Of a stretch of DNA of 26,132 bases, positions 2,831 to 22,667 are shown piece after piece. The notes below the pieces were generated by a model. The model saw only the letters and a list, made by a program, of their open reading frames with translations, made no database searches and was not told the DNA's origin. Source of the stretch: Paramicrosporidium saccamoebae KSL3 (taxonomy: Eukaryota > Fungi > Cryptomycota). The stretch covers positions 22,239 through 48,370 of the forward strand of contig MTSL01000075.1 of the NCBI GenBank assembly GCA_002794465.1, in the 5' to 3' direction. How positions within the stretch are numbered: position 1 is the stretch's first letter; the number at the start of each line of letters is the position of its first letter. Position numbers and translations under genes: made by a program.

Positions 2831-2919
2831 TCCATACTATTTATCCCCACTACGCGACGATATAATACCATAGATACTCATTCCCAATCAAAAGTCTTTA
2901 CCATAAGCCCCTCAATTAC
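2831..2919 (-). other. Conserved non-coding element, copy A
   Basis: 2843-2868 matches 22597-22622 at 23/26 nt. CTCAATTAC is shared at 2911-2919 and 22659-22667. Confidence 0.7.
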
Positions 2920-3056
2920 CGAGCCAAATAAATGTTTAGGTCAGGTATAAAGTTTCACTAACTTGGAAACTCGGATGCACCGAAACTGACAACCAACTCG
3001 AGTAAGGATTCTTCCTGTCGCCTCATGAAGATATAGGTCAGACAGGAGGCGTTTTA

Positions 3057-3413
3057 TTAGCTCAGAAATTTGGATGCACTGTGCAAATGACAACTAGCCT
3101 GAGTAAGAATCTTCCCCGCTGCCTCAATCCGTTCCGAGACTTTCTGGATCCGTGTCTCGATCAAATCCGAGTCCCTCTCCTCAAGCACATTGTCGGTCTG
3201 CTCTTTGAACCATTTCCGAATTTGTGTTTGAGCCAGTCCAACCTCTTTTGAGACTTGGGCAACGATCCTTCGCGCGGGTAGCATGCCTTCGTGCTCCTTG
3301 TGGAGCTGGACGAGTCTCTGCAGCTGGGTGTAGGACATGCCATTAAAGTCGTCGGTGGAACAGTAGCGTTGGATCTCACACGCGAGACGACTCCGCCTGC
3401 GAACTGCTACCAT
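3057..3413 (-). CDS. Atypical homeodomain + coiled-coil protein (HD-A)
   Basis: MSYTQLQRLVQLHKEHEGMLPARRIVAQVSKEVGLAQTQIRKWFKEQ fits the three-helix homeodomain register (Q12, L13, L16, P26, L40, I45, W48, F49), followed by heptads. The listed ORF starts at GTG 3521; the first ATG is at 3413. Confidence 0.75.
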   Translation of the reverse strand: MVAVRRRSRLACEIQRYCSTDDFNGMSYTQLQRLVQLHKEHEGMLPARRIVAQVSKEVGLAQTQIRKWFKEQTDNVLEERDSDLIETRIQKVSERIEAAGKILTQASCHLHSASKFLS

Positions 3414-3567
3414 GTCGGCCAGGACAACGGGCCCGCTGGAGGGTTGACCACTTTCCTGAAATGGAAAGTGGATCGTTGATGGCACGGCGCCTTCCTTATT
3501 TGTCAAAAGTTTAATGCCCACTGAGGGGTCATGGCACTTTCAATGTTCAAGTAGCTTCACAGAAAAC

Positions 3568-3584
3568 ATGGTTTTCAAAACCAT
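3568..3584. promoter_or_regulatory. 17-bp inverted repeat ATGGTTTT-C-AAAACCAT between the two homeobox genes
   Basis: Perfect 8-bp arms with a 1-nt spacer, upstream of HD-A. The regulatory role is a guess. Confidence 0.3.
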
Positions 3585-3603
3585 ACTTTTATGAGCATCG
3601 CAA

Positions 3604-4239
3604 TTACCTAATTAGCCAACTAGGGGCAAAGTACACGAGAGAATCGGCATAGGCTCTAGATTTCTTCAATTCGTCTTCCAGCCATTCAATCTTTCTCTGA
3701 AACGACATAATCTGCCCCTCAATGTGATCGATCCTCCGCATCACTAGCTGCGTCTCGTTCTCCGGAACTCTGGGCACCTCATGGGTCGTATTGGGTTTGG
3801 AACGCTCGAGGAACCACTTTCGTATTCGGCTCTGCGACAGCCTAAGCTTTATGCTCAAACTGCGTATCTCACGACGAGACGGAAGCTTTCCACCATGCTC
3901 CAGAAATGCATGTTGAAGGTCAAACTGGTTCCGGTCGGTGAGCTGGCTAAACGTGTCACTGAAGCAAAAGGCATCCATTGGACTTGCTCTCTTTGCTCTC
4001 TTGCTTGGGACAATCGACAGGGTTCCGGTCGAGATGGATGCACAACTTGGATCACTGGGCACCTCTATTCCCGTCCGTCTCACTGTGTTGCAGACATTCG
4101 GATTCTCCTTTCCCATAACACTGTGGACGGCGGCGTCATTCTGTCCTTCCGATCGCCTGGATACACCGAAATTCCGCTCCATCCTCCGACCACATTCGCT
4201 CCATTCCTCCGGTCCAAACATGGATGTCTCCAGTCGCAT
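3604..4239 (-). CDS. Atypical homeodomain + coiled-coil protein (HD-B), paralogue of HD-A
   Basis: LTDRNQFDLQHAFLEHGGKLPSRREIRSLSIKLRLSQSRIRKWFLERS (L16, F20, P26, L34, L40, I45, W48, F49). C-terminal heptads LVMRRIDHIEGQIMSFQRKIEWLEDEL. ATG at 4239. Confidence 0.85.
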   Translation of the reverse strand: MRLETSMFGPEEWSECGRRMERNFGVSRRSEGQNDAAVHSVMGKENPNVCNTVRRTGIEVPSDPSCASISTGTLSIVPSKRAKRASPMDAFCFSDTFSQLTDRNQFDLQHAFLEHGGKLPSRREIRSLSIKLRLSQSRIRKWFLERSKPNTTHEVPRVPENETQLVMRRIDHIEGQIMSFQRKIEWLEDELKKSRAYADSLVYFAPSWLIR

Positions 4240-4305
4240 CCTTCCGCTACATTCCGGTATGACCCGAAGATTTTATACGTAAACTCCCAACTTTATTCAC
4301 GCCAA

Positions 4306-5020
4306 TCACACGCCAGCAGAGAAGCGTGTGACAATGGAGCCCCGGAGCGACTTTGTTGAGCGCGGCGTGTTGAGAGAGGTTTGAACGTCTGTGGTAATGC
4401 GCTCTCCACGTTTGCGTAGGTCAGCGGCTTGTTGTCGTTCACGGTAGGAGCGCTCCAGGAACCGGGCGTAGTCAATATAGGCGGTGAAGCACAGTATGCT
4501 CAACACAATCTACACGCCATCAGTCGGCATTATCATTGATCCTACCAGGGCCACACTAACAGAGACAAGGACAACACCCAGCACATAGTACAAGTCGAAC
4601 ACTCTTGGGCAATCGCCTGGACTGTCACAGAGTGACCTATATAGAGTCATCTTTGACAGATTCACTCCCACAATGATCGTCGCAATAATATTGAGCATAA
4701 CAGCCAGTCCGTCCAGCAGAATGAAAATCAAAATAAGCGTTCTCCGCCTCTGTCTACTCAGTCTCTTATGTCGCAAACTACCTTGAGGACAGCCGGCAAA
4801 CCGACGAGACTGACGAGCACTGCAAACCCGCTGACAATGATCTGGAATATGTTTGCATTTACAATCTCAGGGGTGATGAAAAACTTGGCGGTCAACAACA
4901 AAGAGCTGACAATCTACATTCAAGACAGCCCTCCTGCCATACTAAATCTGAAAAAATGGCTGTCCGGGCAGCAGTAGTTATGGAGCAGATTTTGAGAAAT
5001 CGGGGCTGCTCAGATTCCAT
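4306..5020 (-). CDS. Four-transmembrane (tetraspan-like) membrane protein, 205 aa; exons 5020-4943, 4913-4782, 4749-4546, 4509-4306
   Basis: Three phase-0 GT-AG introns (4914-4942, 4750-4781, 4510-4545) join MESEQPRFLKICSITTAARTAIFSDL|IVSSLLLTAKFF...VSLVGLPAVLK|RRRTLILIFILLDGLAV...CDSPGDC...YYVLGVVLVSVSVAL|IVLSILCF... It has four hydrophobic segments and a Cys pair in the second loop. Confidence 0.75.
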
Positions 5021-5398
5021 GTGAGTAAACAAAAAGGATTAATGCGGCGGTTGTAGTAAACCCTTTGTTATGGGCTTCTGATCCTTGTGGAGCTTGTGTT
5101 TATAAAAAAACAAAGGGCTGTCAGGTATTATCTATACTCTTCCGCAGTAGCAGGAATTCTTTAAATCTGGGCTGTAATTATGATATGATATACTCTCACA
5201 ATAGGCCCTTTATCCCTGGTTCTTAGACACGCACTCTTACAATTAAGCTCTAGAGTTAATTGTCATTTGCCAATTAAACTGACTTTATGGTAAAACGGTA
5301 GTGCGCCCAACTCTAGATCAAAAGGTTGAGTATTCAGATCGCTCTGTTTGACATCGATTCTGTTCGTGTTGCAGGGGCCAACAACGGGCTGCAGTCTT

Positions 5399-6329
5399 AT
5401 GGTACGAGAATCCATCTCGATTCTTCTCTGTCTAGGCTGAGCGAAAAGCAACCAACAAGTATTACCCACCTGACTGGGATCCCTCCAAGGTTTGTACAAG
5501 ATTGTGGGCATTGACGTGTACGTAGGGCTCCATTAATAAGCACCTTGGACAGCACCCGTTGCGCGCGCGTGCCCGCAAACTGAATGAGGGCATTCTCGTC
5601 ATCCGTTTTGAAATGCCTTTTAACATTTGGTGTCTTGGCTGCAACCAACACATTGGTCGTGGCGTCCGCTTCAATGCCGAGAAGAAAAAGGTTGGCGATT
5701 ACTACAGCACGGCCATCTGGAGTTTTCGCATGAAGTGTCATTTATGCAGCCACTGGATGGAGATTCGTACCGACCCAAAAAACTCGGAATATGTGGTTAC
5801 TGAGGGCGCGAAGCGGAAGATGGAGGAACGCAGCGCAGAGGAGCTGGGCATCAAGGCGCCGTTGGGGTTGAAGGAGGCCGAGATGATGCAGAACAATCCC
5901 TTCTTTAGACTTGAGCACCAGGTGGCAGACGAAAAGGTAGCACAAGTAATGGTGCCAAAACTGAGTGCCATACAGACAGTGAATGAGCGGACTTGGAAGG
6001 ACGACTACGAGGCCAGTAGACTTTTGCGCAAAAAGTTTAGAGAGGAGAAGCAGCTGATGAATGAGGAGCGTAGTCGAGTTGATGCACTAAGGTCAAAATT
6101 GTCTATAGACTTGAAGCTGCCAAAAGAACGCGAAGAAGATGTCGTCATGGCCAGAAATCTTGGTCTGGATAGGAGGAAGACTGAAAGCCTGAGTGAAGCG
6201 ACAAAGCGCATTAGAGACGATTCCATCTTTGGCAACCGCCCTAATATCAAGAAGTTGTCGTTTGGAGACGAAATTGATGAACCCCTAGATCTTGTTCCCA
6301 AGCGGATGCTGAGACCTCGAAAGGAATAG
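5399..6329 (+). CDS. YJU2B: Splicing factor YJU2B/CCDC130 (Saf4 family); exons 5399-5401, 5436-5489, 5526-6329
   Basis: M|AERKATNKYYPPDWDPSK|GSINKHLGQHPLRARARKLNEGILVIRFEMPFNIWCLGC...GVRFNAEKKKVGDYYST...FRMKCHLC...TDPKN matches the CCDC130 N-terminus. Introns at 5402-5435 and 5490-5525. Confidence 0.93.
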
Positions 6330-6337
6330 TGCTTTAT

Positions 6338-7639
6338 TTACATATTCACAGTGTCCCCCATATCAAGTTGCGATTCCGAAAGTGAAATTGACACTGGCCG
6401 ATATTTCATTCTACTGCTAAGAACTGCAACCCAGCGATCCCGCTCGGCTTCTGAAGCACACTGGAAAACATAGCGATCCCTTCTCCCCTCTACCAACTGT
6501 CCGTTGACGTATTTTGCACTTTTGATTAGCGGCAAGACGTCGCCCCTCCCAAACAAAAAACTTTGACTAGACGCATTGCTCTTGACGCTCCTCATGCTGC
6601 CCACGGAAACCACTGTGCCTAGAGAGCCCGCGGTCGATTGGGCCTGGATTGAACCATCTAACCAGGACCCGCCCTGCAAGCTATCGTCTGCTGTGATTTC
6701 AAAGCGAAACTTGCCGCGTCGATCGAGAGGACGTACAGTGAGGTCCTCAAGAGGGATGACGCCGCGTGGAGACTTGTCTTGGTGACTGTAGAAATAATAG
6801 AGACATCCATTGACAATGACGCACCAGCGACGATTCCAAGAGTGGAAACGGTCACTCTTCTTCCAGAGCATTCCCTCCAGGTCACAAGAACTCAGAGTGT
6901 AATCAAAAATTCCCTCCGTTTCAGTTGTTAATTCATCCTTGGCGATCGAGTCGAAAATGTCCTTGGAGATTAGTCACAGTGGCGCGAATATACTGATAGT
7001 AGACTGTCGGGGACGTTTGTAGCCTCTTCAATTGCTTTGCTATTGGTAATGAAAATCTCTTTGGACATTCTCCGTGGGTTGTTGGGGTTATGGAGGTCCG
7101 TGTTTAGGAGAATCATAGAAAAGGACAATACAAAGACGGTGCTGCTGCTGGGAAAGGTGGTTGGGTTGCACTCATGAAAATGCTCTGCAAAGGCCTGTAG
7201 GAGACGATCAATTTTCTGTGCTTCCCCCGGCAGCTTGAACCTTGCCAACAGCCTCCTAAGCGCCGTCTCTAAGGAAAGACCTGCCATTGATATCATTTCT
7301 AAATAACACTTCAGCACGTTTTGATTTTTCTTATGACTAAAACATGATCCACATTAGTTGCAGTACAATCCAGCCAAGTACTCGCCAATCTGCACTCGAT
7401 CAAGGAATCCACAATGCTGCAGGAAGCTGGCAATTTCCCTTGGGTTATCTTCAATCAGCTGGTTCCGAACGAGGAATTCAATGCCCTTTTCGGCACTCAC
7501 CGCAAACTTGCTGCGCGCCTTGTCAATGGCATCAGTCCGGTGCGTGCCCTTTCTCGGACTCGCAGTCCCCGTCACTGTTCTAAAAATCAGCTGCTTGGCC
7601 AGAGTACATTAGAGGGACCGTGATGTTCGTCTCCTCCAT
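6338..7639 (-). CDS. Cytohesin/ARNO-type Arf-GEF (Sec7 + PH); introns ~7580-7607, 7337-7366, 6962-6993
   Basis: Sec7 motifs KGIEFL, QIGEYL, FKLPGEAQKIDR (catalytic Glu) and VLSFSMILLNTDLHNP. PH motifs GMLWKK..FHSWNRRW, CLYYF, PRGVIPLEDL, and the cytohesin hairpin LIKSAKYVNGQLVEG. The first intron boundary is ambiguous. Confidence 0.9.
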
Positions 7640-7728
7640 TAATAGCAACACTCACGACACCAACTAATTGTACCAATCAGCCCATCTACCCCAAAACGGC
7701 AACAATCAACGGGTAATTCATTATCTTT

Positions 7729-8817
7729 ATGCTTCGCTTCCTGCGGACGGCGCGCCGGTTTGGGACCGTAGCAGAGGGCAATCCGATTGATATGGGTTAC
7801 GTCATGTCGCTGATTGAAAGACCAGTGGAACGTCCCAAAACTGGCTTTAGGATGACTCCGGAACGGTGGCCAGACATTTCCGTATCGGCATCGGTGTTTA
7901 AGCTGAATTTGGATGAATACCGCATGGAAAAGGTAGCCGAGCGCAGCACGCCGCAGCCAGATGCATCCCAGATGCAGAATGTGCATGAAGAGGACGAATT
8001 TTGGCCCTTGTTGAGTGACAATGGAACGGCGTCGTTAGACGAGGTCATTGACAACAACCTCTCCCCGAACAAGACACAGGATGCCGAGACGAGTTTGAGA
8101 AAAATTGAGGGCATGCTAAAGACAATTGGTAGGGGCCGGTGGAATGTGGGTGATCGGAGGAACAAGTCAAACGAACGCTTCATTTCTCATTTGGAAGAGA
8201 TTTCATTTGGCGATTTGAAAAACAAGTCACTCTATTCGGTGCTTTCTAAGGCATTTGATGTTGAGACGGTCATACCCGACGTAGCCGTAGAAGAGTCCAC
8301 ACCAACGGTCCCAGAACAGTTGCCGATAATTCCAGATACTCCGTTGGTGCTGAGTGGGATTGATCTGCACTTGGTGGAGTTTGCACAGCTACAAAGACTG
8401 GCTAGATTGTATGGAATTGAAGATCAGTCGTCCCGAAACCAGCTGGAACGCAAATTGTGCAAATGGTTTGGAAAATTAATTGCTGATGGTTCTCCATTTA
8501 AGAGGATCCAGTATTTATCTGACGAGACGCTTCGGCACTTTACTCCCAAGAAAGCGCAAGGGCCGCCCACCACTTGGACAGAAGAGGAAGATTTGCAATT
8601 GGTCCGATTAACTGAAAAGATTAGAGATGCACGTCTTCATATTGTCAACCAAGTGGATTCCTATTTGCAGGAAAATCATTGCAGCCAATCCGCTCCGGAG
8701 GTTGACGAGAGTGACAATCTCTGGGAGGTGGTGGCGCAAAACTTTGTTGCCACGCCCAAGGCCTGTAGGAAACGCTGGATGCTCTTGCTGCGAATGCGCG
8801 AAATGTGTGCGAAATAG
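7729..8817 (+). CDS. Hypothetical protein with mitochondrial-presequence-like N-terminus and C-terminal Myb/SANT-like repeat
   Basis: 362-aa ATG ORF. N-terminus MLRFLRTARRFG; C-terminus TTWTEEEDLQLVRL...LWEVVAQNF..TPKACRKRWMLL has the Myb W-W-W pattern with an insertion. Confidence 0.8.
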   Translation: MLRFLRTARRFGTVAEGNPIDMGYVMSLIERPVERPKTGFRMTPERWPDISVSASVFKLNLDEYRMEKVAERSTPQPDASQMQNVHEEDEFWPLLSDNGTASLDEVIDNNLSPNKTQDAETSLRKIEGMLKTIGRGRWNVGDRRNKSNERFISHLEEISFGDLKNKSLYSVLSKAFDVETVIPDVAVEESTPTVPEQLPIIPDTPLVLSGIDLHLVEFAQLQRLARLYGIEDQSSRNQLERKLCKWFGKLIADGSPFKRIQYLSDETLRHFTPKKAQGPPTTWTEEEDLQLVRLTEKIRDARLHIVNQVDSYLQENHCSQSAPEVDESDNLWEVVAQNFVATPKACRKRWMLLLRMREMCAK

Positions 8818-8941
8818 ATTGACCCCACTGAACGCCGGATTGAGCGCTGAACTAAGTTACTGGTGTGGTCCCATTAGAGTGGCACAATTGTCATGTTTCA
8901 ATTGATTTAGATATAATAAACCTGCGACACTTGATTGGCCA

Positions 8942-10485
8942 ATGTCGGTGCAAGTTGTGCTGAATGGACAGACTTTGCATGTGGCGCCGGCAGAGTTTTC
9001 ACTAAAAGTCGAGGATAACCTTGTCGTAATAGCCGTGGGAGGGAATGCCTGCATGGTAGGGTGAGAATGAACAACCTTGACTGGTGTAGGTGCAGCCGGC
9101 TCTGATATTTACACTCCGACGGACAATGACAGATAATGAGAGTTTCGTCTTCACCATGGCGTCACACTGTTTCACTGCTCTCTCATTAAGTTATCGCGAG
9201 CGACAGGTGCACGAACAGGTCACACAATTCATGGAACAAGTGGCCAAGGTCCAGCGACAAAAGTTAAAGAGTCCCAAAAAGAAGACGCCAATGTCGATGG
9301 AGGAGGAAGATTATGAGAGGATGGGAGTTATTCACAGCGATTCAAAGTGGAGAATCAGTCGGGTAAATGACGAATTTCAAGTAAATTGTGCTCCCATACT
9401 GTCTTTCCTCTTAGATTTGCCCAACATATCCGAGATTGCTCGTGATGCCCAAGAGCGTTAGCGATTCAGTGTTGAGACATGCGGCTCGCTTCCGTTCCCG
9501 CGGACGTCTGCCTATCCTTTCTTATCTGTACTCCTCTGCGGCACTCCTTCGTAGCAGCCAGGCCCTCGTCGGTCTGCAACGCAATCGTAGTATCCAGGAC
9601 GAACATCTTTTGGCCGCCATCACCGAACTTGCTCCTCATAAAGAGTTGCTCATTGTGGATGCACGACCGACTAAGAGCGCAATGGCTAATGCAGTCACTG
9701 GAGCAGGATTCATGCCGCTGGAGCATTACGGAGAGTGTCGACGAGTGTATTTGGGGATTGAGAATATTCATGCGGTCAGGGAGGCGTATCTTGCCGTGTT
9801 TGAGGGATTGCTAGAAGGTCTGCCGTTGCGAACAGCCAAACTGGATGGAGGGTGGACGAAATTTTATGAGCGCATCATGGAGGGAGTCAAGATTATTGTT
9901 GAGCATCTAAAACTGGGACTGGCAGTGCTGGTCCATTGTAGCGATGGATGGGATCGAACGGCTCAGCAAGTATCTCTTGCCCAGATTTGTCTTGACCCAG
10001 CCACCCGTACCATTGACGGTTTCATCGCCCTCATCCAAAGAGAATGGATTTCTGCTGGCCATCAATTCGCTGCCCGTCTGGGACACACTCTCCCCCTAAA
10101 TGCGCTACGTCCCCCCACCGCTGCGCGCTCCATTTCGCGAGTCTTCTCCAACTTTACGCGCACCGGCAGCGAGGAGACGATCAAACAGCCTCAAGATGAG
10201 TATTGTCCCGTCTTTCCGCAGTTCCTTGACTGTGTGTTGCAGTTCATCAGGGTGTATCCCACGGCCTTTAACTTTGATCACAGATTGGTAGAACTCATCT
10301 GGAAGGAGGCGTACGCTTTGCAAACAGATACATTTAGATTTAATTGCGAGCAGGAAAGAATGACGGTGGAGACGCCAATGTGTTTCTGGTCCTTTTTGAA
10401 GGAGAGACGAGACGAACTAGCCAATTCTGGATACCAGCCGACTGGAGAGTTGTCCATTAACAAAGACGTCATGTTTTACTTGTAA
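8942..10485 (+). CDS. Myotubularin-family PI3P/PI(3,5)P2 phosphatase (Ymr1/MTM); exons 8942-9055, 9090-9380, 9415-10485
   Basis: ICPTYPRLLVMP, FRSRGRLPILSY, IVDARP..AMAN..GAG, IENIHAVR, active-site VLVHCSDGWDRTAQ, LIQREWISAGHQF, PVFPQFLDCV. Introns 9056-9089 and 9381-9414 (34 nt each). Confidence 0.95.
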
Positions 10486-10717
10486 TATAATCCCCCATGT
10501 GAGAGGTGATGGGAAATGTTGTCTAGTAGTAGGTAGATGAGGAAAAATTTATTCATTGCCGGTTTTTGGGCTCATATTTTTAACAAATGTCCTTTTAACC
10601 CATTCGCCCTGCTAATCCATCACTTGCCCTGCCAACTTATTACTTGCCATAATGACTACTGAATTCAAACAATGAATTAAGCAATTATCCTTTCTGCCCC
10701 CCCCCTTTTACCGGGAT

Positions 10718-10723: not shown

Positions 10724-10727
10724 TAGT

Positions 10728-10798
10728 TGGTCCTACCGAGGTTCGAACTCGGGTTGTGGGATTCAAAGTCCCAAGTGCTTCCGCTACACCATAGGACC
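10728..10798 (-). tRNA. tRNA-Gln (anticodon TTG)
   Basis: Minus strand folds as GGTCCTA/TAGGACC acceptor stem, GTGT/GCAC D stem, TGGGA-CTTTGAA-TCCCA anticodon arm and CCGAG-TTCGAAC-CTCGG T arm. No intron. Confidence 0.97.
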
Positions 10799-10843
10799 AC
10801 GTCACTAGAAGTGAATTATAATTACTTGACTATGTATAATAAA

Positions 10844-14089: not shown

Positions 14090-14174
14090 CAGAGAAACGA
14101 ATATTTAAATTTGCATTTCCCAAATAACGCGAGTTGTGCGATTACTTGTGTATGAATATGATGCAGCTGTGGAT

Positions 14175-14321
14175 GTGTGAGGTCATAAAGGGTCGGTGTG
14201 AGATTGTAAAGGGTCGGTGTGAGATTGTAAAGGGTTGGTGTGAAATCATAAAGGGTCGGTGTGAGGATGTAAAAGGCCGGCGGGAGGTTGTATAAATTTG
14301 GTGTGAGGTTGTGTATGAATA
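14175..14321. repeat. 21-bp minisatellite, ~7 units (GTGTGAGATTGTAAAGGGTCG), in the ARP8 / SET-gene divergent intergenic region
   Basis: Units start at 14175, 14196, 14217, 14238, 14259, 14280 and 14301. A 13-bp direct repeat TTGTGTATGAATA occurs at 14146-14158 and 14309-14321. Confidence 0.92.
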
Positions 14322-14474: not shown

Positions 14475-16286
14475 ATGACGGGATCCCATCTGGAGACTCC
14501 TAGTCCAATCATTGCTGGCGTTTTCACAGAAAAGTATGTGCGGAGGGAGCATTGCAGGATGTGCGGTGCTTTTGAAGTAAGGGGTAAATATGCTCCGTGG
14601 GTATTCTGTAATAATTGTGGTGAATCCTACCATCAGTCCTGCGCACCGAACGCTCCAGACCCCGAACATCCTATCCGCGGCTGGCTGCCTCCCGGATACC
14701 ACGCACGGTGGAATTGGCAGTGCCCAGATTGCCGTTCCTGCTCCACATGCAGTTCTGAAGGTGCAGAGGTGCTTGTATGTCAAGACTGCAACAAGTCATG
14801 CTGTTCCACATGTGACACTGGAATGGATATTAATTTATGCTTCTACTACCAGTGCCTCGACTGTCGGCAACAAAGGCCGCGGAAGTGTCTTGGATGCGAT
14901 AAGGAAATTTCGGGTAGCATACGTCTCAAGCTCTTCTGTCCCACCTGCAGTCAACATTCTGCATGTCCACGATGCAAAGTGCGTTTCTCAGATGACGATT
15001 ACACGCAAGAAATGGTTTCCTGTGAAAACTGCAGCAATTGGACCCATTACTCCTGCACTGGATTCACCGAAGCGCAATGCGCAGCTCTTGGTGATCCAGA
15101 GGTAAAGTTTTATTGCTGTCGTTGTGAGGCTAGTCAGGGCTTTCAACATGATGGGACCTGTGGACTGCCTGCTCAATGTTCGGGCTGCGCCGATGGAGTT
15201 GCGGAAAGCTTTTTGCTTCCCACCCAATTGCACGTAGATTTGAATGTTTTATTGCCGACAGCGTTTAGCCATCAAAAATGTTTCAACCGCAAGGGTAATG
15301 TATCGATGCTCCAGACACCGGTTATGTGGTACCGGCACGGATCGCTGTCCATATTGATCCCGATGATACTAAATGACCGCGAAATGCATATTGTCTTTGT
15401 CGGCTGGCATCCACGGAAGCACCGCCAGCGAACACGATTTTTATTCCGGATTTCATTCAATAACAAGTGGAATATTGAAAGCGTCCAAGGCACCCTTGAT
15501 GGGATGTCAACCACCGCCAAGACTATCTCTGCTACGTATAGAATGCTAGCCAGATCAAATCCTGTGGATTTCAAGAGAATCTTTCAGATCTTTAATGCAT
15601 TTAGGGAAAGGCTAAAGTCGTTCTACCAGGCCCCTCCTGCGGTCCATCCTATCAAAGAAAAGCCTTTGCCGTTGCAAGGACCCCCTCTACCGCCATCAAG
15701 CGAATTGCCGACTAAATATGACAGTATTCGTCTGAAAGAGTATGTGAGGAAATGGAAGAAGCCCATAGTTATAGAGTTGAAAAGGTCTCTTGCTGAGCAA
15801 CAAGTATTTGACAAGGTTGCTGCTGTTAATAATCGAAACAACCTTCAGCTGCACCCTCATCGTCATCTCCACGTTAGACGTTCACACATTGCGGGATTTG
15901 GTCTCTTTACTTCTCAGGCCATCACTGCGGGAACCAAGATTTTTGAATACTGCGGCGAGCTGATCGGTCAACTGGTTGCTGATCGGCGCGAATTACTATA
16001 TGGTTTGCTACCACTTCGACGCCACGATTGCTATCTGTTCCGCCTCTCAGATGACCGCATCATTGATGCCACTCTCCGTGCCAACGCGGCACGGTTTATC
16101 AATCATTCATGTGCCCCCAATTGCGAGTCCAAGGTAATATGCAGTAGTCGGATTGTCATAGTGGCACTGCGAGATATTTCAATGGGAGAGGAGCTCTCCT
16201 ACGATTACAAGCTTAGTAGTGAGGGAGTGGAGGATGTTGCACCCTGTTATTGTGGAGCCCTTGAGTGCAGAAAGTTTATGAATTAA
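14475..16286 (+). CDS. Compact trithorax/MLL (KMT2)-like histone H3K4 methyltransferase: 3 PHD fingers + FYR-like region + SET/post-SET, 603 aa
   Basis: PHDs CRMC..CNNCGESYHQSC..WQCPDC, CSTC..CQDC..CSTC..CLDC and CPRC..FSDDDYTQEMVSCENCSNWTHYSC..YCCRC. SET RSHIAGFGLF, FEYCGELI, CYLFRL..IDAT..NAARFINHSCAPNC, GEELSYDY. Post-SET CYCGALECRKFMN. First ATG in frame is 14475. Confidence 0.9.
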   Translation: MTGSHLETPSPIIAGVFTEKYVRREHCRMCGAFEVRGKYAPWVFCNNCGESYHQSCAPNAPDPEHPIRGWLPPGYHARWNWQCPDCRSCSTCSSEGAEVLVCQDCNKSCCSTCDTGMDINLCFYYQCLDCRQQRPRKCLGCDKEISGSIRLKLFCPTCSQHSACPRCKVRFSDDDYTQEMVSCENCSNWTHYSCTGFTEAQCAALGDPEVKFYCCRCEASQGFQHDGTCGLPAQCSGCADGVAESFLLPTQLHVDLNVLLPTAFSHQKCFNRKGNVSMLQTPVMWYRHGSLSILIPMILNDREMHIVFVGWHPRKHRQRTRFLFRISFNNKWNIESVQGTLDGMSTTAKTISATYRMLARSNPVDFKRIFQIFNAFRERLKSFYQAPPAVHPIKEKPLPLQGPPLPPSSELPTKYDSIRLKEYVRKWKKPIVIELKRSLAEQQVFDKVAAVNNRNNLQLHPHRHLHVRRSHIAGFGLFTSQAITAGTKIFEYCGELIGQLVADRRELLYGLLPLRRHDCYLFRLSDDRIIDATLRANAARFINHSCAPNCESKVICSSRIVIVALRDISMGEELSYDYKLSSEGVEDVAPCYCGALECRKFMN

Positions 16287-16370
16287 GTTGGCAGAGCAAA
16301 TGTGTATTGACATGGGAGGCCAGACACTCCGAAGTGACATGGAGGTTGGCCCGGCCGGGGTAACGGGAAA

Positions 16371-17513
16371 ATGACCTTTGACTTGGCTCGCCTACTGGAC
16401 ACTCGTCCCGCCAGTTCCAGCGACAGCGAAGGTCCTCATGATTATGATCCTGAAGATGCTGACTTTGGGAACACAGCGGACCGCACTCGGGCCGGCTCCA
16501 AGCGCGTCCTCGAGGATTCGCGTTCTCACTACCGCGACGCTCTGCCCAGGACAAAGCATCTTGCCCTACCCATCGACGACTCCTCCTTCTTGGATGGTCG
16601 TTACGCAGGAGCCAAGACTACTCGCTCCAACTTGGGTCTTGATCCTACTACCACGCAAACAGGGGAAGAGTCATTTTCAGAGGAAGAGGAGCGCTTTGAC
16701 TATGAGGCGCCCGAGGTACGATTACGAGAACAGTTAAAGGCATATCGGGAGGCGGAGGAGATGCAACTGGAGATGGTGGCAAAGAGAGCGACCGACGATG
16801 TGGAGCGGGGCCGACACGTCAGACAGCAGCTGGAAAAGTGGCAGTCTGCGCTGGATCTGAGAGTAAGACTTCAGCCCCTCCTCACTATGACAAATAAACT
16901 CCCCGCCCCACCACAGCTGCACGCTTTAAAAGAACACTTGAGTTCTGAGATGGGACAAACAGAAAAGGATTTATCCCTTTTGACCGACACGTTGACTGCT
17001 CAGCTTACTGACGGCACTGACAGCGGCGAAGTGCAATTGGCTCGTCTCGATAAGGAAATGTCCCCCATTTGGCAACTCTCCTTGGACAAATGGAATCAGA
17101 AAATGGCACTTTCGACCGGAGGCAGCTCAAAGCGACAGCTAAAGGTGATCAACGCCTCCCTCTGGTCGCAGGTGGAGGCGGCGATGCGAGATCGCTCTCG
17201 ACTAGTCCGCCGCGCTACCACAAGACGCGGAGAGATGCCTCTTTTTGGCCCGGATGCGCCGGTTTTTGACGACAGCGATTTCTTTGCAACGCTCGTCCGG
17301 ACGTGGGTCGGAGAGGAGGCCAGTACGGCTGGATTGGTGGTGAAGAGGGTAAAGACTGGAAAAATGGTTGACACACGGGCCAGTAAAGGAAGAAAGATGC
17401 GATATGATGTCCATGATAAACTCGTCAACTATATGGTGCCAGTGGCCGATCCTACTCTGTGGGGCGATGCCAAAATTGATGCATTCTTTGCCTCTGTCTT
17501 TCCTGAACAATAA
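16371..17513 (+). CDS. BFR2: BFR2/AATF small-subunit processome protein
   Basis: DVERGRHVRQQLEKWQSALDLRVRLQPLL (AATF domain), WNQK, VFDDSDFFATL, and TRAUB-type VDTRASKGRKMRYDVHDKLVNYMVP. Confidence 0.93.
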   Translation: MTFDLARLLDTRPASSSDSEGPHDYDPEDADFGNTADRTRAGSKRVLEDSRSHYRDALPRTKHLALPIDDSSFLDGRYAGAKTTRSNLGLDPTTTQTGEESFSEEEERFDYEAPEVRLREQLKAYREAEEMQLEMVAKRATDDVERGRHVRQQLEKWQSALDLRVRLQPLLTMTNKLPAPPQLHALKEHLSSEMGQTEKDLSLLTDTLTAQLTDGTDSGEVQLARLDKEMSPIWQLSLDKWNQKMALSTGGSSKRQLKVINASLWSQVEAAMRDRSRLVRRATTRRGEMPLFGPDAPVFDDSDFFATLVRTWVGEEASTAGLVVKRVKTGKMVDTRASKGRKMRYDVHDKLVNYMVPVADPTLWGDAKIDAFFASVFPEQ

Positions 17514-17574
17514 ACTGTACTCTATTAGTGCCATTATTAGTCAATATCCGTTGTTCATGGAGGCGAGAAACGGA

Positions 17575-17684
17575 GAGATTGACACTCCAAACATGTTTTA
17601 ACATATCGATAAAGTACGTGGACGTGCTCTTGTCGCGTAACAGGGATAATACCATTTACTTTGACAAGCGTATTGACAGGCGTA
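17575..17684 (+). other. Conserved non-coding element, copy C
   Basis: 17632-17670 matches the reverse complement of 22574-22612 at 30/39 nt without gaps. It carries an internal 12-bp tandem TTGACARGCGTA x2 at 17661-17684. Confidence 0.7.
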
Positions 17685-17820
17685 TGAAAACATGTCCATT
17701 ATCGCTTGGTGTTTACAGTCTTATAAATACGATACGACGGGTAGACACGTCGTGTTTTGCAGCTATCGCGACTCTTAGCTAGACAATCTAATGTGTTTAA
17801 ATACTGATCACTAACCTCTA

Positions 17821-18696
17821 TTAATTTATTGGTTTGCGTAGCTTGGATTGCACCCAAATGCGGTACATTGTCAGTTTCCGATGACGATTGACTAATAATC
17901 TCCTGTCTGTGACATTACTGACCATCTCAAAGCCCGTCTGGGCAGCCAAGACGACCATCTCCTCTTCGGTGAAATAGTGCACCGCAGTGCCATCGCCCCG
18001 TACATACAAATCGGGTCGGATGAGTCGGTTGGCTTTAAACCGGAGCTGCGTCATATCGTACTTTCCATAGTCCCGGAACAACAACATGCCGCCTGGCTTG
18101 AGCACCCGCCAGATCTTTTCCAGAGCAATAGGCAGTTTGGCCGGATCCAATGCCGACAGCACGAAAATGGAAACGACCACGTCGATCGAGTTGTCGGAAA
18201 TATCCTCAAATTGATCTGGAGATGACAGATCATGTTGGAAGACGTGCATCCTCTGTTCGTCAAACTCTCTAAATTCCCTTACGAGCTTTACGGCTGATGG
18301 CGCAAAATCACAGGCATGGATCATGACTGTCGGATTCTCCCTCGCCAGCGGAAAGACAGTGTTCCCGGCTCCACAACCCACCTCCAATACAGTGTCCGCC
18401 ACAAACAGTTCAGGAAACTCGCTGGAGAGCCATTTTCGGTCTTTGAAGAACCACCGTGAGTGGTTTTCATAGAATTTGTGCCAGTTTTGGGAGGCCGGCG
18501 TCTGCACTACCTCCAAGACGGCATCGGGGTTGGCGAGATGTGGGGAGACGGCAAGTTGTGCAGATATCACTGCATCAGCCGAGGAGGCCAACTCTGGTGA
18601 CCAGGCAACATCATCCCACGAGTTGTGTGTCCAGACCTCAGAGTCTTCTTCTAATTTTCTATTCCTAGTGGTCATAGGCCCAACAGGGGTAAGCAT
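17821..18696 (-). CDS. METTL2: tRNA m3C32 methyltransferase, METTL2/Trm140 family
   Basis: HNSWDDVAW, NWHKFY..FFKDRKWLSSEFPEL, VLEVGCGAGNTVFPL, ACDFAPSAV, IFVLSA, LKPGGMLLFRDYGKYDMTQLRF, YVRGDGT..HYF, NRHRKLTMYRIWVQ. Confidence 0.93.
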   Translation of the reverse strand: MLTPVGPMTTRNRKLEEDSEVWTHNSWDDVAWSPELASSADAVISAQLAVSPHLANPDAVLEVVQTPASQNWHKFYENHSRWFFKDRKWLSSEFPELFVADTVLEVGCGAGNTVFPLARENPTVMIHACDFAPSAVKLVREFREFDEQRMHVFQHDLSSPDQFEDISDNSIDVVVSIFVLSALDPAKLPIALEKIWRVLKPGGMLLFRDYGKYDMTQLRFKANRLIRPDLYVRGDGTAVHYFTEEEMVVLAAQTGFEMVSNVTDRRLLVNRHRKLTMYRIWVQSKLRKPIN

Positions 18697-18726
18697 CTAA
18701 ATTTATTAACATGGGGTCTAAATCAT

Positions 18727-18765
18727 CTCTGGCCATGAACAACTCTGGCCATAAACAACTCTGGA
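18727..18765. repeat. 16-bp tandem repeat CTCTGGCCATRAACAA x2.4
   Basis: Units at 18727-18742 and 18743-18758, with a partial unit at 18759-18765. Confidence 0.8.
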
Positions 18766-18767
18766 AA

Positions 18768-18947
18768 CTACAGATCTGCACGGACCTTGCCTGAAAGGGT
18801 CGATTTCGTTACGCGGGGCTTCTCCACGACGGGAAGTGGGGCATCTACGTCAAATCTCTCCGAACTGCGCACCAGTCTTCGCAGGGTAGATTTGTGTCGT
18901 GGAATGGACGCTGCCGCCACTACGACCAGGAATGCAAAGAAGCGCAT
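18768..18947 (-). CDS. Small secreted protein, 59 aa (below the ORF-track cut-off)
   Basis: MRFFAFLVVVAAASIPRHKSTLRRLVRSSERFDVDAPLPVVEKPRVTKSTLSGKVRADL*. Classic n/h/c signal peptide with an AAA cleavage site. It fills an otherwise empty gap on the same strand as both neighbours. Confidence 0.65.
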   Translation of the reverse strand: MRFFAFLVVVAAASIPRHKSTLRRLVRSSERFDVDAPLPVVEKPRVTKSTLSGKVRADL

Positions 18948-19059
18948 ACTTGTGAATGGGGTGATGGTTGGTTCGGGAATTATATGTCGGTTGGTTCGGG
19001 AGAAGGAACGAATGATATGCGGCCATGCACTTGTTGGGAACCAATCAACAGTCTATAAT

Positions 19060-20642
19060 TTATTGAATTGCACTAGCAAACTCTGCAAGCAATTCTGCAG
19101 CAGTATCTTCTGTAGTTGGCGAAACCGCCAAAGCTGACGCTGACAAAATAAGGGGAGATGGAACATTTGGCGGAGCCAAGGGGGTGGGTGTAGACGCCGA
19201 TGCAGATGTGGACAGTGTGGATAGTGTGGATAGTGTGGATAATGTGGGTAATGTGGATAGTGTGGTTGGTGCAAACGAAGAGTCAATAGTCTTTTCAGTC
19301 ACACCCGTCAATTGTACAGAAGCATCACTGACGGGTGTGGAAGCATTAGTCAAAGAAGCACTTGGGTCTTCTTCCAGTCCATTTCTTTTCACTTGTTCAT
19401 CACCAATAAATAATTCCGACTTGAGCGGTCCATCAGGTCCCATCTTTAACACCAGTTTGATTGGTGATTTCGGCAAAGCATCTTCTAGTCCAAATGATTT
19501 CTCCATCTCAGATGATCCCTCCCGCTCAGATAATTCCTGCCGCTCAGATGATCCCTCCCGCTCAGATGCTTCCTCCAGTTCAGACGTCTCCTCCAGTCCG
19601 ACTGAATCATTACCCACTTCTATATCCTCGTCCATCCGCGATTCGGCCAGCACCTTTTCCAACTCAATCTTTGCAACCTTTTGACTTCTCATTGCAATAC
19701 GTTCTTCCCTCGTCATGACCCGTCGCTCTTCTTTCTTGGAAATGCGAGGACCCTCTTCCAGCTCATGCACATATTTAATACGCTCATTAGCAGCAATGCG
19801 GGAAGATCGTTTTCTTGACTCGGTCAGAGCGATTCGCTGTATCTCCAACTGTTCCTTCTTCATAAGAGCCTTGACTCGTCGTTCTTCTTCAATCAAAATG
19901 GGCTCTGCAACCGAAAAGATTGTTCTTTGAAGGTGCTTCAGTAGCGCCTTGTCGCTGCCGCGACGGCTGTTACTGAGTGAATTATCCTGAAGAAATTGGG
20001 TCCAAGATGGGATATCCCAAGCCACACATTGCCAATCATTGTCCTTTTCACCTTCTTCAAACAGCCAACAGTCGCCCAAGAACCAGAAAGAGTGTCCTCG
20101 TTTGTCTTTGCCCAAAGGCTCTACCCGCCATGCAGCTCCCTTGTCACGTATCCGACTGGTAAGTGTTTCGTCGTTGAACAACTGGAAAGAGCACAGACTA
20201 AAGAGCACAGTCAGGCGCTGGGTGTTGTCGAGTATGGACAGCGGTGGCCACTTTTTGAGGCCCGTGTCCATGTCTATGAACGGCTCCAGGTGTATACAAT
20301 TTGCGCCCAGATGTCTCCGATATTCGCGGTTTATGGTCTGTGTCAAGCATTTGTCACTACACTGTCAGAACCTGGCCATTGTTTTACGAGCTAGTCTTGG
20401 AGCGGTGGAGACTCTTTATAAGCTTTTTGTAAAGCTTCTCGATGGGGGAATCACCCTCGCTACCTATAATGGGCTCATCGATGAGCCTCTCCAATGCCTA
20501 TACATTAAGGTCCTGCGGCCAAGATTACAAATGGCGTCATCGGCTCAAGCCCCAGTGCCTCCCAAAACAAGTGCAAAAACTGCAGCGTGTTGGCGAAAGC
20601 ATAGCTGTCCCGCACGCGATCCCCCTGTTGTGCACCGTCCAT
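19060..20642 (-). CDS. RSF1/CECR2-like DDT-WHIM1-WSD chromatin-remodelling accessory protein; introns 20498-20528, 20357-20387
   Basis: FANTLQFLHLFWEALGL (DDT-like), LSILDNTQRLTVLFSLCSFQL (WHIM1), RVEPLGKDKRGHSFWF...WQCVAWD (WSD), RKRSSRIA, then a low-complexity tail. The start codon is uncertain. Confidence 0.75.
19206..19268. repeat. Coding 9-bp microsatellite x7 (T-L-S repeats)
   Basis: RTGTGGATA units encode TLSTLPTLSTLSTLSTLST on the minus strand. Confidence 0.85.
19507..19596. repeat. Coding 18-bp minisatellite x5 (REGSSE/LEEASE repeats)
   Basis: CTCAGATGATCCCTCCCG-like units at 19507, 19525, 19543, 19561 and 19579. Confidence 0.85.
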
Positions 20643-20821
20643 CACCAAGCTGCACCGAAGAAGGTAGCTAGCTATACCTGAAACGGAACACTTTCTGCCC
20701 CGTACCCCAGCGAACCAATCATATTTCATCCCGTCCATTGTTAACCCAAAACACCGACAAGATGATAAATTAGCTCTGGAGCTTACAGATAAAGGGGGCC
20801 CATGGGAAGCCAATTCACGCC

Positions 20822-21448
20822 ATGACCGCGCCGGCCTGTAGCATTCCGAGCCTAAATCTTCCTATGCAGGGCGAAAAATCGCCCTACTATGTTGCTCCGG
20901 AAAAGATGACCCCATTACAGAAACATTGTGCCTTTTTCGACCGCAATGGCGACGGTCTCATCATGCCCTGGGAAACGTATGAAGGCTTTCGCATTCTCGG
21001 CTACAATCTGCTCCTCTCCCTCTTTGGCACCTTCCTTGTGCACTTCTTCTTCAGTTACTGGACCCTAGACACATGGATCCCCGATCCCTTCTTTGCTATT
21101 GTCTTGCGGAATGTGGATAGACTAAAGCACGGGAGCGATACAGAGGTTTATGAACATGATGGAACAATCAAGCCCATACAAGGAGATGCAGTGGCCACCA
21201 TGCTGGGACGCTTTGACGGAGACGGGAAGGGCGGAATGGATTTTATGGAAATGATTTGGATGACGCAGCGAAAATGGGATGTGCTAGACTTTTTTGGCTG
21301 GTGGGCTGCCAAATTTGAATGGATTTTCATGTGGATCCTCTCCCAAAAGAATGGTGTAATGAGCTGGGATGACATTAAGGGACAGTATGATGGCTCCTTG
21401 TTCAAGGATATCGAGGCAAAGAGACGCGGGGAAGGATTGGTCCGTTAA
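20822..21448 (+). CDS. Caleosin/peroxygenase
   Basis: LQKHCAFFDRNGDGLIMPWETYEGFR (heme His plus EF-hand), a hydrophobic hairpin with proline knot IPDPFF, KHGSD, and WWAAKFEW. Confidence 0.93.
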   Translation: MTAPACSIPSLNLPMQGEKSPYYVAPEKMTPLQKHCAFFDRNGDGLIMPWETYEGFRILGYNLLLSLFGTFLVHFFFSYWTLDTWIPDPFFAIVLRNVDRLKHGSDTEVYEHDGTIKPIQGDAVATMLGRFDGDGKGGMDFMEMIWMTQRKWDVLDFFGWWAAKFEWIFMWILSQKNGVMSWDDIKGQYDGSLFKDIEAKRRGEGLVR

Positions 21449-21499
21449 CATAATGATATTAGTTGCTATATAAATATTCGAGCTTGCTCTCACCAAGAT

Positions 21500-22306
21500 T
21501 TATTTCGAGGATTCGCGGTAGCATTCTATACTGCACACTGGGATTTTCAGATGAGAGTGCATATATCTTTTAACGTTTTTACAACCCTTCACTGAACAGA
21601 GCAAAGGTTTGGGGTAGTCAACTGGTTTCTGCATAATCAATGGCACACTCTGGCCTAGAATCAGTACATTCTTGTCCTTGGTAATGACCGACCTAGCCCC
21701 GTAAGGCTTAATTCCATCCAACTTTGCGTCTGTCTTTTCAACCTCTGTATCTTGAGTCCTCATCTTTTTCGACCTACTCGACTGCTTTTGCAATAACCTT
21801 TGTATAGTATCGGCCTTGCTTTGCTCTAATTTCTGGTCGCGCATCATCAACCTCCTCCTACTCTTTTCACTCTTCCTCAACTGTTCCTCTTCCGTCAATT
21901 CTCGAGGTAAGAGGTGCTCTGTGGATGGCATCGAGTCGAGACTTCCCGAGAGGAGAGTTCGCTGGCGTGCCGTTAGTTTGGCGGGGGAGGTTTCGCTGCC
22001 GGAAACTGAAGTAAGAGAGAGGGCGTCATCATTGCTTTCTGCTTCGGATAGGGAGAGGGACAGGTCGCTTCCAGGCTCGGCAGCTTCAGTGGACTCGTCA
22101 GGAGACTCGTCAGAGGATTCTGGCTCGGGTGGGGCAACCTTTTTCGTGGCACGGACGGACCTGGCTGCCGGTAACTGGCGTTTCGACGGTACTTCGCGAG
22201 CAGTCCTGGTGCTTCTCTTGGACTTGTCGGGTAGGACGGTTACAGATTCTACTGAGCTTGCACTTGCGCTGCTGCTACTCTTTAAAATAATCCTCTTGGG
22301 AGGCAT
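21500..22306 (-). CDS. IES2: INO80 complex subunit B / Ies2 (PAPA-1 domain + zf-HIT)
   Basis: LTARQR, LTEEEQLRKSEKSRRRLMMRDQKLEQSKADTIQRLLQKQ (PAPA-1), and C-terminal CSVKGC..KRY..SHLKIPVCSIECYR. Confidence 0.85.
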   Translation of the reverse strand: MPPKRIILKSSSSASASSVESVTVLPDKSKRSTRTAREVPSKRQLPAARSVRATKKVAPPEPESSDESPDESTEAAEPGSDLSLSLSEAESNDDALSLTSVSGSETSPAKLTARQRTLLSGSLDSMPSTEHLLPRELTEEEQLRKSEKSRRRLMMRDQKLEQSKADTIQRLLQKQSSRSKKMRTQDTEVEKTDAKLDGIKPYGARSVITKDKNVLILGQSVPLIMQKPVDYPKPLLCSVKGCKNVKRYMHSHLKIPVCSIECYRESSK

Positions 22307-22573
22307 TATACAATATTAAATTATTTTGTAACTGTGAGGTTAGCATGTCATGAGGTGGAATCCGTTTACCCTGTAGATCCGTAGCTATTGTGACGTAGAA
22401 GACTGATTAGTTGGGTAGTTGAGAATGGTTTCCTAGTTTAGAGAAGGGATAATCAGAACAATCGATGAAGGATAATGAGGTCTTTACCATTTGGGGGTTA
22501 TGTTATTTGTGACTATAAATGGGTCGTTGAATTGATTGAATAAATTCTCTTCTCGTCCCATCTCGTCTCTCCC

Positions 22574-22667
22574 CGCCTGACAAAATCCGTGGTATCATCC
22601 CCATTACGCGACGCTATGATACGCTCTCCCAAGAGCCTGTTCAAACTCTTTTTTAATTCTCAATTAC
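22574..22667 (-). other. Conserved non-coding element, copy B
   Basis: Shares 23/26 nt with copy A and 30/39 nt with copy C. Confidence 0.7.

Follow-up and report, generated by a model that had tools for sequence, protein, structure and literature searches.

Intergenic motif copies in Paramicrosporidium saccamoebae as the probable best-preserved block of a decaying dispersed repeat family

Three copies of an intergenic motif in Paramicrosporidium saccamoebae (Rozellomycota), here called A, B, and C, are probably what has survived best of an old, decaying repeat family, non-coding and dispersed, and the family most likely represents the relics of a mobile element. Judged from sequence comparison, the motif is the most conserved part of a repeat unit of ~0.3 to 0.5 kb, and the copies of this unit are related by descent. 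The motif copies lie in a stretch of 26,132 nt (the window), and the wider comparison covered 55.7 kb of the contig to which it belongs, MTSL01000075.1. On this one contig, five to seven of the ~24 sizeable intergenic gaps derive from the single diverged family. The genome paper for P. saccamoebae gives 76% gene space and only 0.53% repeats, most of them simple (PMC5701793).

A preliminary description had quoted the three copies from the window, and each was recovered exactly: A on the minus strand from 2868 to 2831, B on the minus strand from 22622 to 22574, and C on the plus strand. They are as follows:

2831 to 2868, minus strand: copy A of the motif, with the intact core GTCGCGTAGTGGGGATAA at 2858 to 2841
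17632 to 17670, plus strand: copy C of the motif, with the intact core GTCGCGTAACAGGGATAA at 17632 to 17649
22574 to 22622, minus strand: copy B of the motif, the most complete version, with the intact core GTCGCGTAATGGGGATGA at 22612 to 22595

The ungapped identities reported for them, 23/26 between A and B and 30/39 between B and C, also held, and the repeat listing carries these matches as family D17 and as I1, the window's longest inverted repeat. Smith–Waterman scores were 37 for A–B and 33 for B–C, with shuffle means of 19 to 20 (sd 2.2 to 2.5). The pattern GTCGCGTA[R][Y][R]GGGAT[R]A occurs three times in the window, far above chance. At up to two mismatches, the common core GTCGCGTARYRGGGAT, a pattern derived from the copies themselves, has three matches where 0.04 are expected. 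A 32-nt position weight matrix (PWM) scored A, B, and C at 41.6 to 47 bits, the next site in the window at 11.7, and the best shuffle at 16.4, and the window holds no site of in-between similarity. Four core positions vary among the three copies, all of them by transitions. Copy B is flanked by 7-nt inverted arms (GTATCAT/ATGATAC), and a 12-bp tandem duplication, TTGACARGCGTA twice at 17661 to 17685, directly follows copy C.

Homology between the copies reaches far past the motif, and the unit extends from ~100 to 200 bp upstream of the core to ~230 to 280 bp downstream. We scanned the 55.7 kb with the PWM for extra copies, as had been suggested; the scan added the decayed cores of two copies, D and E, and left A, B, and C as the only intact ones. 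When 24 intergenic gaps were aligned all against all, the top five pairs were all among the gaps of A to E. The strongest homology, between B and D, spans ~240 bp (z = 17 to 24, nhmmer E = 1e-11 to 8e-11), with matches in 157/259 columns for B −5 to +232 (75% at ungapped positions). A (+42 to +158) and E (+72 to +194) match at 78/122 (z = 12.6, nhmmer E = 5e-7 to 1e-6), B and E align from −25 to +76 or +78 (z = 9.7, nhmmer E = 8e-6), and A and B align from −97 (−98 on the B side) to +28 (z = 5.1 to 7.3). For copy C, B–C is the sole significant pair, and C aligns with no other copy outside +0 to +39. Identity at aligned ungapped positions is only ~67 to 78% between copies.

Based on these alignments, D and E are robust members of the family and F and G likely ones. 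Copy G reached z = 14. The E–F score of 20 was reached by 0/400 shuffles, and B, D, and A support F weakly. A further candidate, copy H beside a tRNA-Gln gene, resembles F only and was left out of the family count. The units and gaps of the window are as follows:

2529 to 2958, minus strand: repeat unit A, which fills the convergent gap bounded by the SUV3 stop (2527) and the stop of a minus-strand ORF (3057)
17514 to 17820, plus strand: the convergent gap that holds copy C, between the AATF stop and the METTL2 stop
18690 to 18785, plus strand: copy F, a probable, strongly decayed member without an intact core, antisense to both neighbors
22380 to 22710, minus strand: repeat unit B, which fills the tandem gap with the VPS9 stop (22725) on one side and the PAPA-1 ATG (22306) on the other

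Unit A contains an internal tandem duplication of ~53 bp at about 2650 to 2790 (family D9). Copy F, whose tandem gap runs from the METTL2 start to the stop of the upstream gene, carries a 16-bp tandem repeat at 18727 to 18764 (TRF).

The copies occupy entire intergenic gaps and stand in either orientation relative to their neighbors. The convergent setting described for A and C was borne out (SUV3 stop at 2527 and ORF stop at 3057; AATF stop at 17513 and METTL2 stop at 17821), and the NCBI gene table concurs with the convergent gene ends around both. Their assignment to three of the largest gaps did not stand, as the gaps of A (529 bp), B (418 bp), and C (307 bp) rank with the window's larger ones and are not its top three. 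Elsewhere in the window, convergent genes are separated by tiny gaps of 8 bp (6329/6338) and 51 bp (21448/21500). In tandem gaps, B is sense to the flanking genes and D, E, and F are antisense to both. This mixture of orientations fits insertion either way round, and it does not fit a promoter or 3′-UTR role for the neighboring genes.

The copies also turn over between sister lineages. The sister lineage has ~93 to 96% protein identity and 68 to 71% identity at third codon positions. Its B gap, at ~417 bp, has the same length as the B gap of P. saccamoebae and is otherwise unalignable; the intact core is absent from it, and a decayed copy is present in the opposite orientation. The intact core was likewise not found in the part of the C gap covered by the sister's contig (214 bp), nor was the family found in more distant syntenic relatives. 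A metagenome scan with GTCGCGTARNRGGGATRATACC gave 0 matches. A second one, with YGTCGCGTARYRGGGATRA, gave 66 single matches with flank identity at random level, mostly in high-GC bacterial contigs, and these were set aside as chance.

Dispersed, non-coding copies in either orientation, related by descent, are present in the 55.7 kb. Their source would most likely be a non-autonomous mobile element, or they may be relics resembling solo LTRs, inserted between genes either way round. Substitutions, indels, and local tandem duplications would later have eroded the copies. The core beginning GTCGCGTAAYRGGGATRATACC is better kept than the rest, likely because it served the element itself as a cis-acting site, for example as a promoter or for binding a protein, and stayed intact in the source copies.

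Among the alternatives offered in the preliminary description, a decayed MITE came closest to what the sequence shows, a decayed dispersed repeat family; the terminal inverted repeats (TIRs) and target-site duplications (TSDs) that would identify a MITE were not demonstrable. What argues against the mobile reading is that no hallmark of any known transposon class was found. In A to E, complementarity between the upstream and downstream sides was not above that of shuffles (B 70/500, A 101/500), and an inverted-repeat search gave only weak arms with 70 to 86% complementarity at inconsistent positions. No TSD was confirmed, and B alone had a candidate: GGGAGAG, which occurs twice around it (7 bp, with 50 bp between), at first looked significant. 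It was rejected because the right copy lies inside the B–E homology and also belongs to a local tandem repeat. The 55.7 kb showed no autonomous partner and no internal reverse-transcriptase or integrase sequence, and the genome paper's low repeat figure (0.53%) likewise counts against a mobile origin. No sign of coding was seen when the core was read in frame by eye, and A has a stop where the frame of B and C is open.

A tRNA-derived SINE was also considered and rejected. By eye, the core TCGCGTAGTGG agrees with the A box TRGCNNAGTGG at 10/11 positions in copy A; a B box was not found, ARAGORN gave no tRNA-like fold, and the homology continues at least 100 bp upstream of the core. Likeness of the core to a tRNA, an A box, or 5S, noted by eye, was supported by neither ARAGORN nor Rfam.

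Several known systems resemble this family in part. Like MITEs and other short relics of non-autonomous DNA transposons, the units are non-coding, a few hundred bp long, intergenic, and dispersed in either orientation, and they form a family with copies at differing stages of decay and lineage-specific presence or absence. Unlike MITEs, they have no significant TIRs, confirmed TSD, or visible autonomous partner, and their conserved block is internal rather than terminal. Solo LTRs such as yeast Ty delta and sigma, often found near tRNA genes, are also non-coding relics of 0.3 to 0.5 kb; in both cases an internal block may be promoter-like, and copies E and G lie on either side of a tRNA-Lys/tRNA-Met pair. 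The TG...CA ends and 4 to 6 bp duplications of solo LTRs are not definable with five to seven decayed copies, and the association with tRNA genes amounts to one locus, copy H at tRNA-Gln being unsupported. Transcription factor or insulator sites carried by transposons, such as CTCF sites spread by mammalian SINEs, likewise have a repeat unit around a long core rich in information, which some copies keep intact and others have lost to decay. In contrast to CTCF-type sites, neither a binding factor nor orthologous conservation was found for this family.

A different reading is that the intact cores of A, B, and C are host cis-elements under selection, the family having spread a site of ~18 to 25 bp for a sequence-specific DNA-binding protein. 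This putative site would now act as an upstream activating element, an insulator or roadblock, or a nucleosome-excluding element between tightly packed genes. We consider this somewhat unlikely, and it is the likeliest of the alternatives. The core is 83 to 89% identical in pairwise comparisons of A, B, and C, with flanks that are barely or not alignable, and the copies closest to A and B by flank (E and D, respectively) have decayed cores. Since the core of A, B, and C is so much better preserved than the rest of the unit, though those of E and D have decayed, selection could be acting on it in place. The 55.7 kb contain no PWM sites of intermediate strength, and the invariant core positions fall into two blocks, GTCGCGTA and GGGAT, separated by a variable 3-nt spacer. 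Some 90 bp downstream of copy B come a TATA-like site and a possible first exon of PAPA-1 (ATG|GTAAAG); similar TATA and ATGGT blocks are readable in the sister's B gap, though the gap alignment is not significant. In the relative L001, a 20-mer of its own, GTGTCGCGCCCCTTGAMCAA, occurs as an isolated pair in two gaps on the promoter side.

Several observations weigh against selection on host cis-elements. A and C point at the 3′ ends of genes that converge and have no gene downstream of them, and the sister lineage is without the intact core in its B gap and in the covered part of its C gap. The 14/18 invariant core positions are about what is expected for three copies at this pairwise identity, so core conservation does not exceed that expectation. 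TATA-like sites at +58, +90, and +93 were noticed post hoc, and that of A lies inside the stretch homologous to E. A literature search for 8-mers of the motif returned primers only, with no matching factor or known motif. Of the known binding sites MCB, Reb1, Abf1, Rap1, the plant snRNA USE, ZNF143, and DREF, none appears to fit all three copies.

In a more far-reaching version, which we hold to be unlikely, the repeat family would have seeded the genome with a long and specific putative protein-binding site, the host would employ those copies that are still intact (A, B, and C) as chromatin boundaries, transcription roadblocks, or origin-like elements between tightly packed genes, and the unused copies D to G would be left to decay. 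If true, a reduced rozellid genome, regarded as nearly repeat-free, would hold a regulatory network derived from a transposon.

The preliminary description had also raised an snRNA-type promoter or a small ncRNA family. The units would then be small ncRNA genes or pseudogenes, perhaps derived from U6 snRNA, and the motif would be their upstream promoter or form their 5′ end. In copy E, the stretch ATCCTGAAATTGGAAGGATACAGA agrees at 21/24 positions with nt 21 to 45 of human U6, a region just upstream of and including ACAGA; only 1/500 shuffles reaches this score. A weaker version sits at the homologous place in D, and B and D share conserved blocks after the core, as do A and E. However, neither Rfam nor consensus folding supported an ncRNA. 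Rfam scans of the five gaps from A to E (gathering thresholds and E ≤ 10) returned only tRNAs and chance-level matches, with none to the family and none to U6, and RNAalifold on four copies gave a consensus fold of 0 pairs, with single-sequence folds that differ between copies. The copies are also no more alike than the ~67 to 78% given above. As for U6, there is no covariance-model match, 5′ stem-loop, AGC/ISL region, or terminator, no similarity colinear with yeast or human U6 outside the 24-mer, and ACAGAGA is not intact in E. A U6 origin of the units was rejected, with the 24-mer in E as its sole match, and we judge the ncRNA reading as a whole to be very unlikely.

The reading that the preliminary description leaned toward was a bipartite replication origin or point centromere, defined by the motif together with a second box at fixed spacing. 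The boxes are as follows:

2911 to 2919, minus strand: second box GTAATTGAG in A, starting 61 bp upstream of the core start
17575 to 17583, plus strand: second box GAGATTGAC in C, starting 57 bp upstream of the core; not significant
22659 to 22667, minus strand: second box GTAATTGAG in B, starting 55 bp upstream of the core start

The spacing is therefore not fixed, and the box is not significant alone: ATTGAG occurs 15 times in the window, the box of C agrees with that of A and B at only 6/9 positions, and upstream similarity in the 120-bp flanks of the copies is not significant. In longer context, the alignment of A and B over −97 to +28 indicates that their box is part of the longer homologous unit and no independent second element. 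Complementarity for a long-range stem between the box and a downstream block was not significant either.

That the intact cores might be origins (ACS-like ORC sites) or centromere or insulator elements draws on a motif that is long and rich in information, on intergenic sites of which two of the three lie in convergent gaps, and on an intact-core density of ~1 per 18 kb in the 55.7 kb, within the range of yeast origin densities. Yeast ARS (ACS + B) and point centromeres (CDEI-II-III) are likewise short, sequence-defined intergenic elements. They are not, however, paralogous over hundreds of bp, whereas the elements here sit inside ~0.4 kb units related by descent. A point centromere is present once per chromosome, with a CDEII spacer of ~80 bp and >85% A+T; the three copies here fall within 20 kb, which excludes a centromere, and the stretch between the boxes is not an AT-rich spacer, in gaps of ~40% G+C and ~60% A+T. 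The sister's B gap and the covered part of its C gap lack the core, and sequence-defined origins are not known from outside the budding yeasts. The bipartite reading is thus without support and seems to us highly improbable.

That the motif is a 3′-UTR or terminator element of the upstream gene on the same strand is scarcely credible: A, B, and C do lie 103 to 190 nt past same-strand stops (3057 minus, 22725 minus, and 17513 plus), but any orientation in a convergent gap is sense to one gene, D, E, and F are antisense to both of theirs, and the sister lineage has not kept the core behind the orthologous stops.

Should the decayed repeat family extend genome-wide, much of this parasite's scarce non-coding DNA would consist of the relics of one element, missed by standard repeat finders, which bears on how genomes shrink and intergenic DNA turns over near the base of the Microsporidia lineage. 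The case also counsels caution, in that what shows up as a short "conserved bipartite element" can be just the exposed part of a decayed repeat. Annotation would be affected as well; one copy of the repeat is presently modeled as a 430-bp intron that fuses two genes.

The three copies of the motif with an intact core, A (minus strand, 2831-2868), B (minus strand, 22574-22622) and C (plus strand, 17632-17670), lie exactly at the coordinates first assigned to them, and their match counts of 23/26 between A and B and 30/39 between B and C were borne out (repeat family D17; also the window's longest inverted repeat). The common core, GTCGCGTA-RYR-GGGAT-R-A, had three matches at ≤2 mismatches against 0.04 expected, and the A-B and B-C local alignment scores were 6-7 sd over shuffles. 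With a 32-nt PWM, the three copies scored 41.6-47 bits, compared with 11.7 for the next site and 16.4 for the top of 30 shuffles. Taken together, the core counts, alignments and PWM scores show that the copies are real and that a graded series of weaker sites is absent.

We surveyed repeats on one contig, MTSL01000075.1, at positions 12394-68064 (55.7 kb; window position equals contig position minus 22238). Rerunning the core PWM over this stretch returned A, B and C as the only intact cores, plus two decayed ones, D and E. Pairwise alignments yielded two further candidates, F and G.

Copies of the repeat in addition to A, B and C
Copy D: contig 65832-65849, minus strand; decayed core, found with the core PWM
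Copy E: contig 49455-49472, minus strand; decayed core, found with the core PWM, 1.1 kb past the window's right end
Copy F: window ~18690-18785; likely decayed copy, from a single pairwise alignment with E whose score was reached by 0/400 shuffles
Copy G: inverted relative to E across the tRNA-Lys/tRNA-Met pair; likely decayed copy, from a single pairwise alignment (z=14)

When 600-bp contexts around each core were aligned in pairs, the similarity reached far outside the motif. The strongest case was B -5..+232 against D (157/259 columns, 75% of ungapped positions, z=24), followed by A +42..+158 against E +72..+194 (z=12.6), B -25..+76 against E (z=9.7) and A -97..+28 against B (z=5.1), all numbered relative to the core. 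An independent method, nhmmer, gave E=1e-11 for B-D, 5e-7 for A-E and 8e-6 to 2e-5 for B-E. When 24 intergenic gaps were each compared with all the others, the top five pairs all fell among the gaps holding A-E. Judged by these alignments, the repeat unit would begin near -100 (perhaps -200) and end near +230/+280, and it occupies entire gaps. F and G are likely further decayed members of the family. Membership of a candidate copy adjoining tRNA-Gln was unsupported. The window has a single tRNA-Gln(ttg), at 10726-10799. In L093, a stretch of the same contig, only 2 nt separate tRNA-Met(cat) from tRNA-Lys(ctt) (7197-7348), with the inverted copies E and G on either side.

We lean, with some reserve, towards a decaying, dispersed family of non-coding repeats, probably relics of non-autonomous mobile elements, in which the motif is the most conserved block. 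Core identity among A, B and C is 83-89%, with flanks that can barely be aligned. By flank, E is closest to A and D to B, and both of these relatives have decayed cores. Neutral decay does not fully account for well-kept cores in A, B and C alongside decayed cores in their flank relatives. The core may be a cis-acting site retained in source copies, so that copies of different age would have it in common. Searches for transposon hallmarks gave little: inverted complementarity between upstream and downstream sequence was not significant in any copy, and a candidate target-site duplication at B, a 7-bp direct repeat, was rejected, its right copy lying inside both the B-E homology and a local tandem repeat. 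The P. saccamoebae genome is reported to be 76% gene space and 0.53% repeats, chiefly simple ones (PMC5701793).

A less probable explanation is that the intact cores are held in place as putative host binding sites. Invariant core positions number 14/18, about the expectation for three copies at such pairwise identity, and 4/4 variable positions are transitions; these counts favour neither retention in source copies nor retention as host binding sites. Among relatives, no family copy was present in three syntenic metagenome contigs (L001, L002 and L004; 64-68% protein identity), and two scans of JGI metagenome contigs yielded no further family members. In a sister lineage with 93-96% protein identity and 68-71% third-codon-position identity, two gaps were readable. 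The 214 bp covered of its C gap, a partial view, contained no core and did not align with the window. Its B gap (contig L091) is complete and about equal in length, and held no site within three mismatches of the core; it did not align with the window's B gap (local score at shuffle level, global z=2). Its opposite strand bears a decayed member of the family: aligned with the reverse complement of the gap, E scored 23.5, reached by 0/300 shuffles, and nhmmer matched the gap to G at E=0.0013. The family therefore stands on both sides of the split, and the intact core was retained neither in the B gap nor in the readable part of the C gap.

The sister B gap also carries a 13-bp tandem array of ~8 copies, and the intergenic DNA of the clade turns over through tandem repeats. 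Within the window, a 21-bp array (14154-14321, consensus GTGTGAGATTGTAAAGGGTCG, ~6-8 copies) occupies the divergent gap between the actin-related and SET-domain genes. Minisatellites in the relatives' gaps differ by lineage, with (TAAGAG)n at L001 10939-11088 and 28 bp x3 at L004 10999-11082. L001 contains an isolated pair of 20-mers of its own, TTGKTCAAGGGGCGCGACAC (19/20), at 8012-8031 and 18074-18093, both in promoter-side gaps; the flanks of the pair are dissimilar, and only GTCGCG is in common with the motif studied here.

Copies A and C do lie between convergent gene ends, as originally described, in gaps of 529 bp (SUV3/ORF) and 307 bp (AATF/METTL2); the remaining convergent gaps of the window measure 8 and 51 bp. 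Of the copies in tandem gaps, B has the orientation of its neighbours (VPS9 and PAPA-1), and D, E and F are antisense to theirs. Such a mixture of orientations speaks against the copies serving adjacent genes as promoter or 3'-UTR.

The reading as a small ncRNA family found no support in an Rfam match or a shared fold. At gathering thresholds Rfam returned tRNAs only, and at E<=10 there was no credible match in the A, B, C, D or E gaps. The folds of the three motifs differ from each other, and RNAalifold predicted zero pairs across four copies. Copy E contains a 24-mer, ATCCTGAAATTGGAAGGATACAGA (L093 7083-7106, window-equivalent ~27127-27150), matching human U6 (nt 21-45) at 21/24 and corresponding to the U6 snRNA stretch ahead of and including ACAGA. 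No colinear similarity to U6, further U6 feature or Rfam match was found in E, and we take the likeness as a lead only.

The bipartite layout proposed in the preliminary description did not hold. Its second box, a short sequence upstream of the motif, is not a distinct conserved element: the window has 15 occurrences of ATTGAG, the C box matches that of A and B at only 6/9, and the box starts 61 (A), 55 (B) and 57 bp (C) ahead of the core rather than at a fixed spacing. The 120-bp flanks of the copies showed no significant similarity. Common descent explains the A/B box, because it lies inside the A-B homologous stretch. The reading as a replication origin or centromere fails on four counts: spacing, composition, number of copies, and conservation as judged from the sister lineage.

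Gene models around the copies also deserve comment. The window's ORFs are of eukaryotic type with few introns, and its VPS9-domain protein is identical to PJF19184.1 (Paramicrosporidium saccamoebae, Rozellomycota) except for the first alignment residues, over which the two gene models seem not to agree. The D gap is flanked by two minus-strand ORFs, which NCBI models as one 1528-aa gene with the gap as a ~430 bp intron (L096 1072-6397, or MTSL01000075.1 ~61.7-67.0 kb); introns seen otherwise are ~30-55 nt. The ORF downstream of D (L096 1072-2010, minus) has an ATG start and a hydrophobic, signal-peptide-like N-terminus, and the model probably joins two separate genes. Similarly, a 1026-aa model (L093 20144-21508) fuses the actin-related gene with the 49-kDa complex I gene.

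On the 5' side of the PAPA-1/Ies2 gene (window 22430-22495, minus), a TATA-like site is followed ~25-28 nt on by ATG|GTAAAG, which suggests a first exon ending directly after the start codon and a gene model longer than annotated. Similar TATA and ATGGT blocks are readable in the sister gap (L091 ~1895-1915), where the gap alignment with the window is not significant. The SUV3 helicase gene contains a 30-nt spliceosomal intron (window 1720-1749, GTAAGG...GGTAG, in-frame stop) inside a conserved helicase motif, very short by fungal standards. Adjoining this gene are two neighbouring paralogous ORFs (3057-3521 and 3604-4239, both minus; BLASTP E=1e-11, identity 29%), each with a weak homeodomain-like helix 3 (..IRKWF..) and one matching Pfam Homeodomain at E=0.0026; they could be a lineage-specific homeodomain pair. 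Finally, within ORF 19060-20346 (minus), 9-bp and 18/36-bp tandem repeats in the coding sequence (window 19197-19598) encode the low-complexity STL/SER-rich tail of a protein whose match to the WSD motif is weak.
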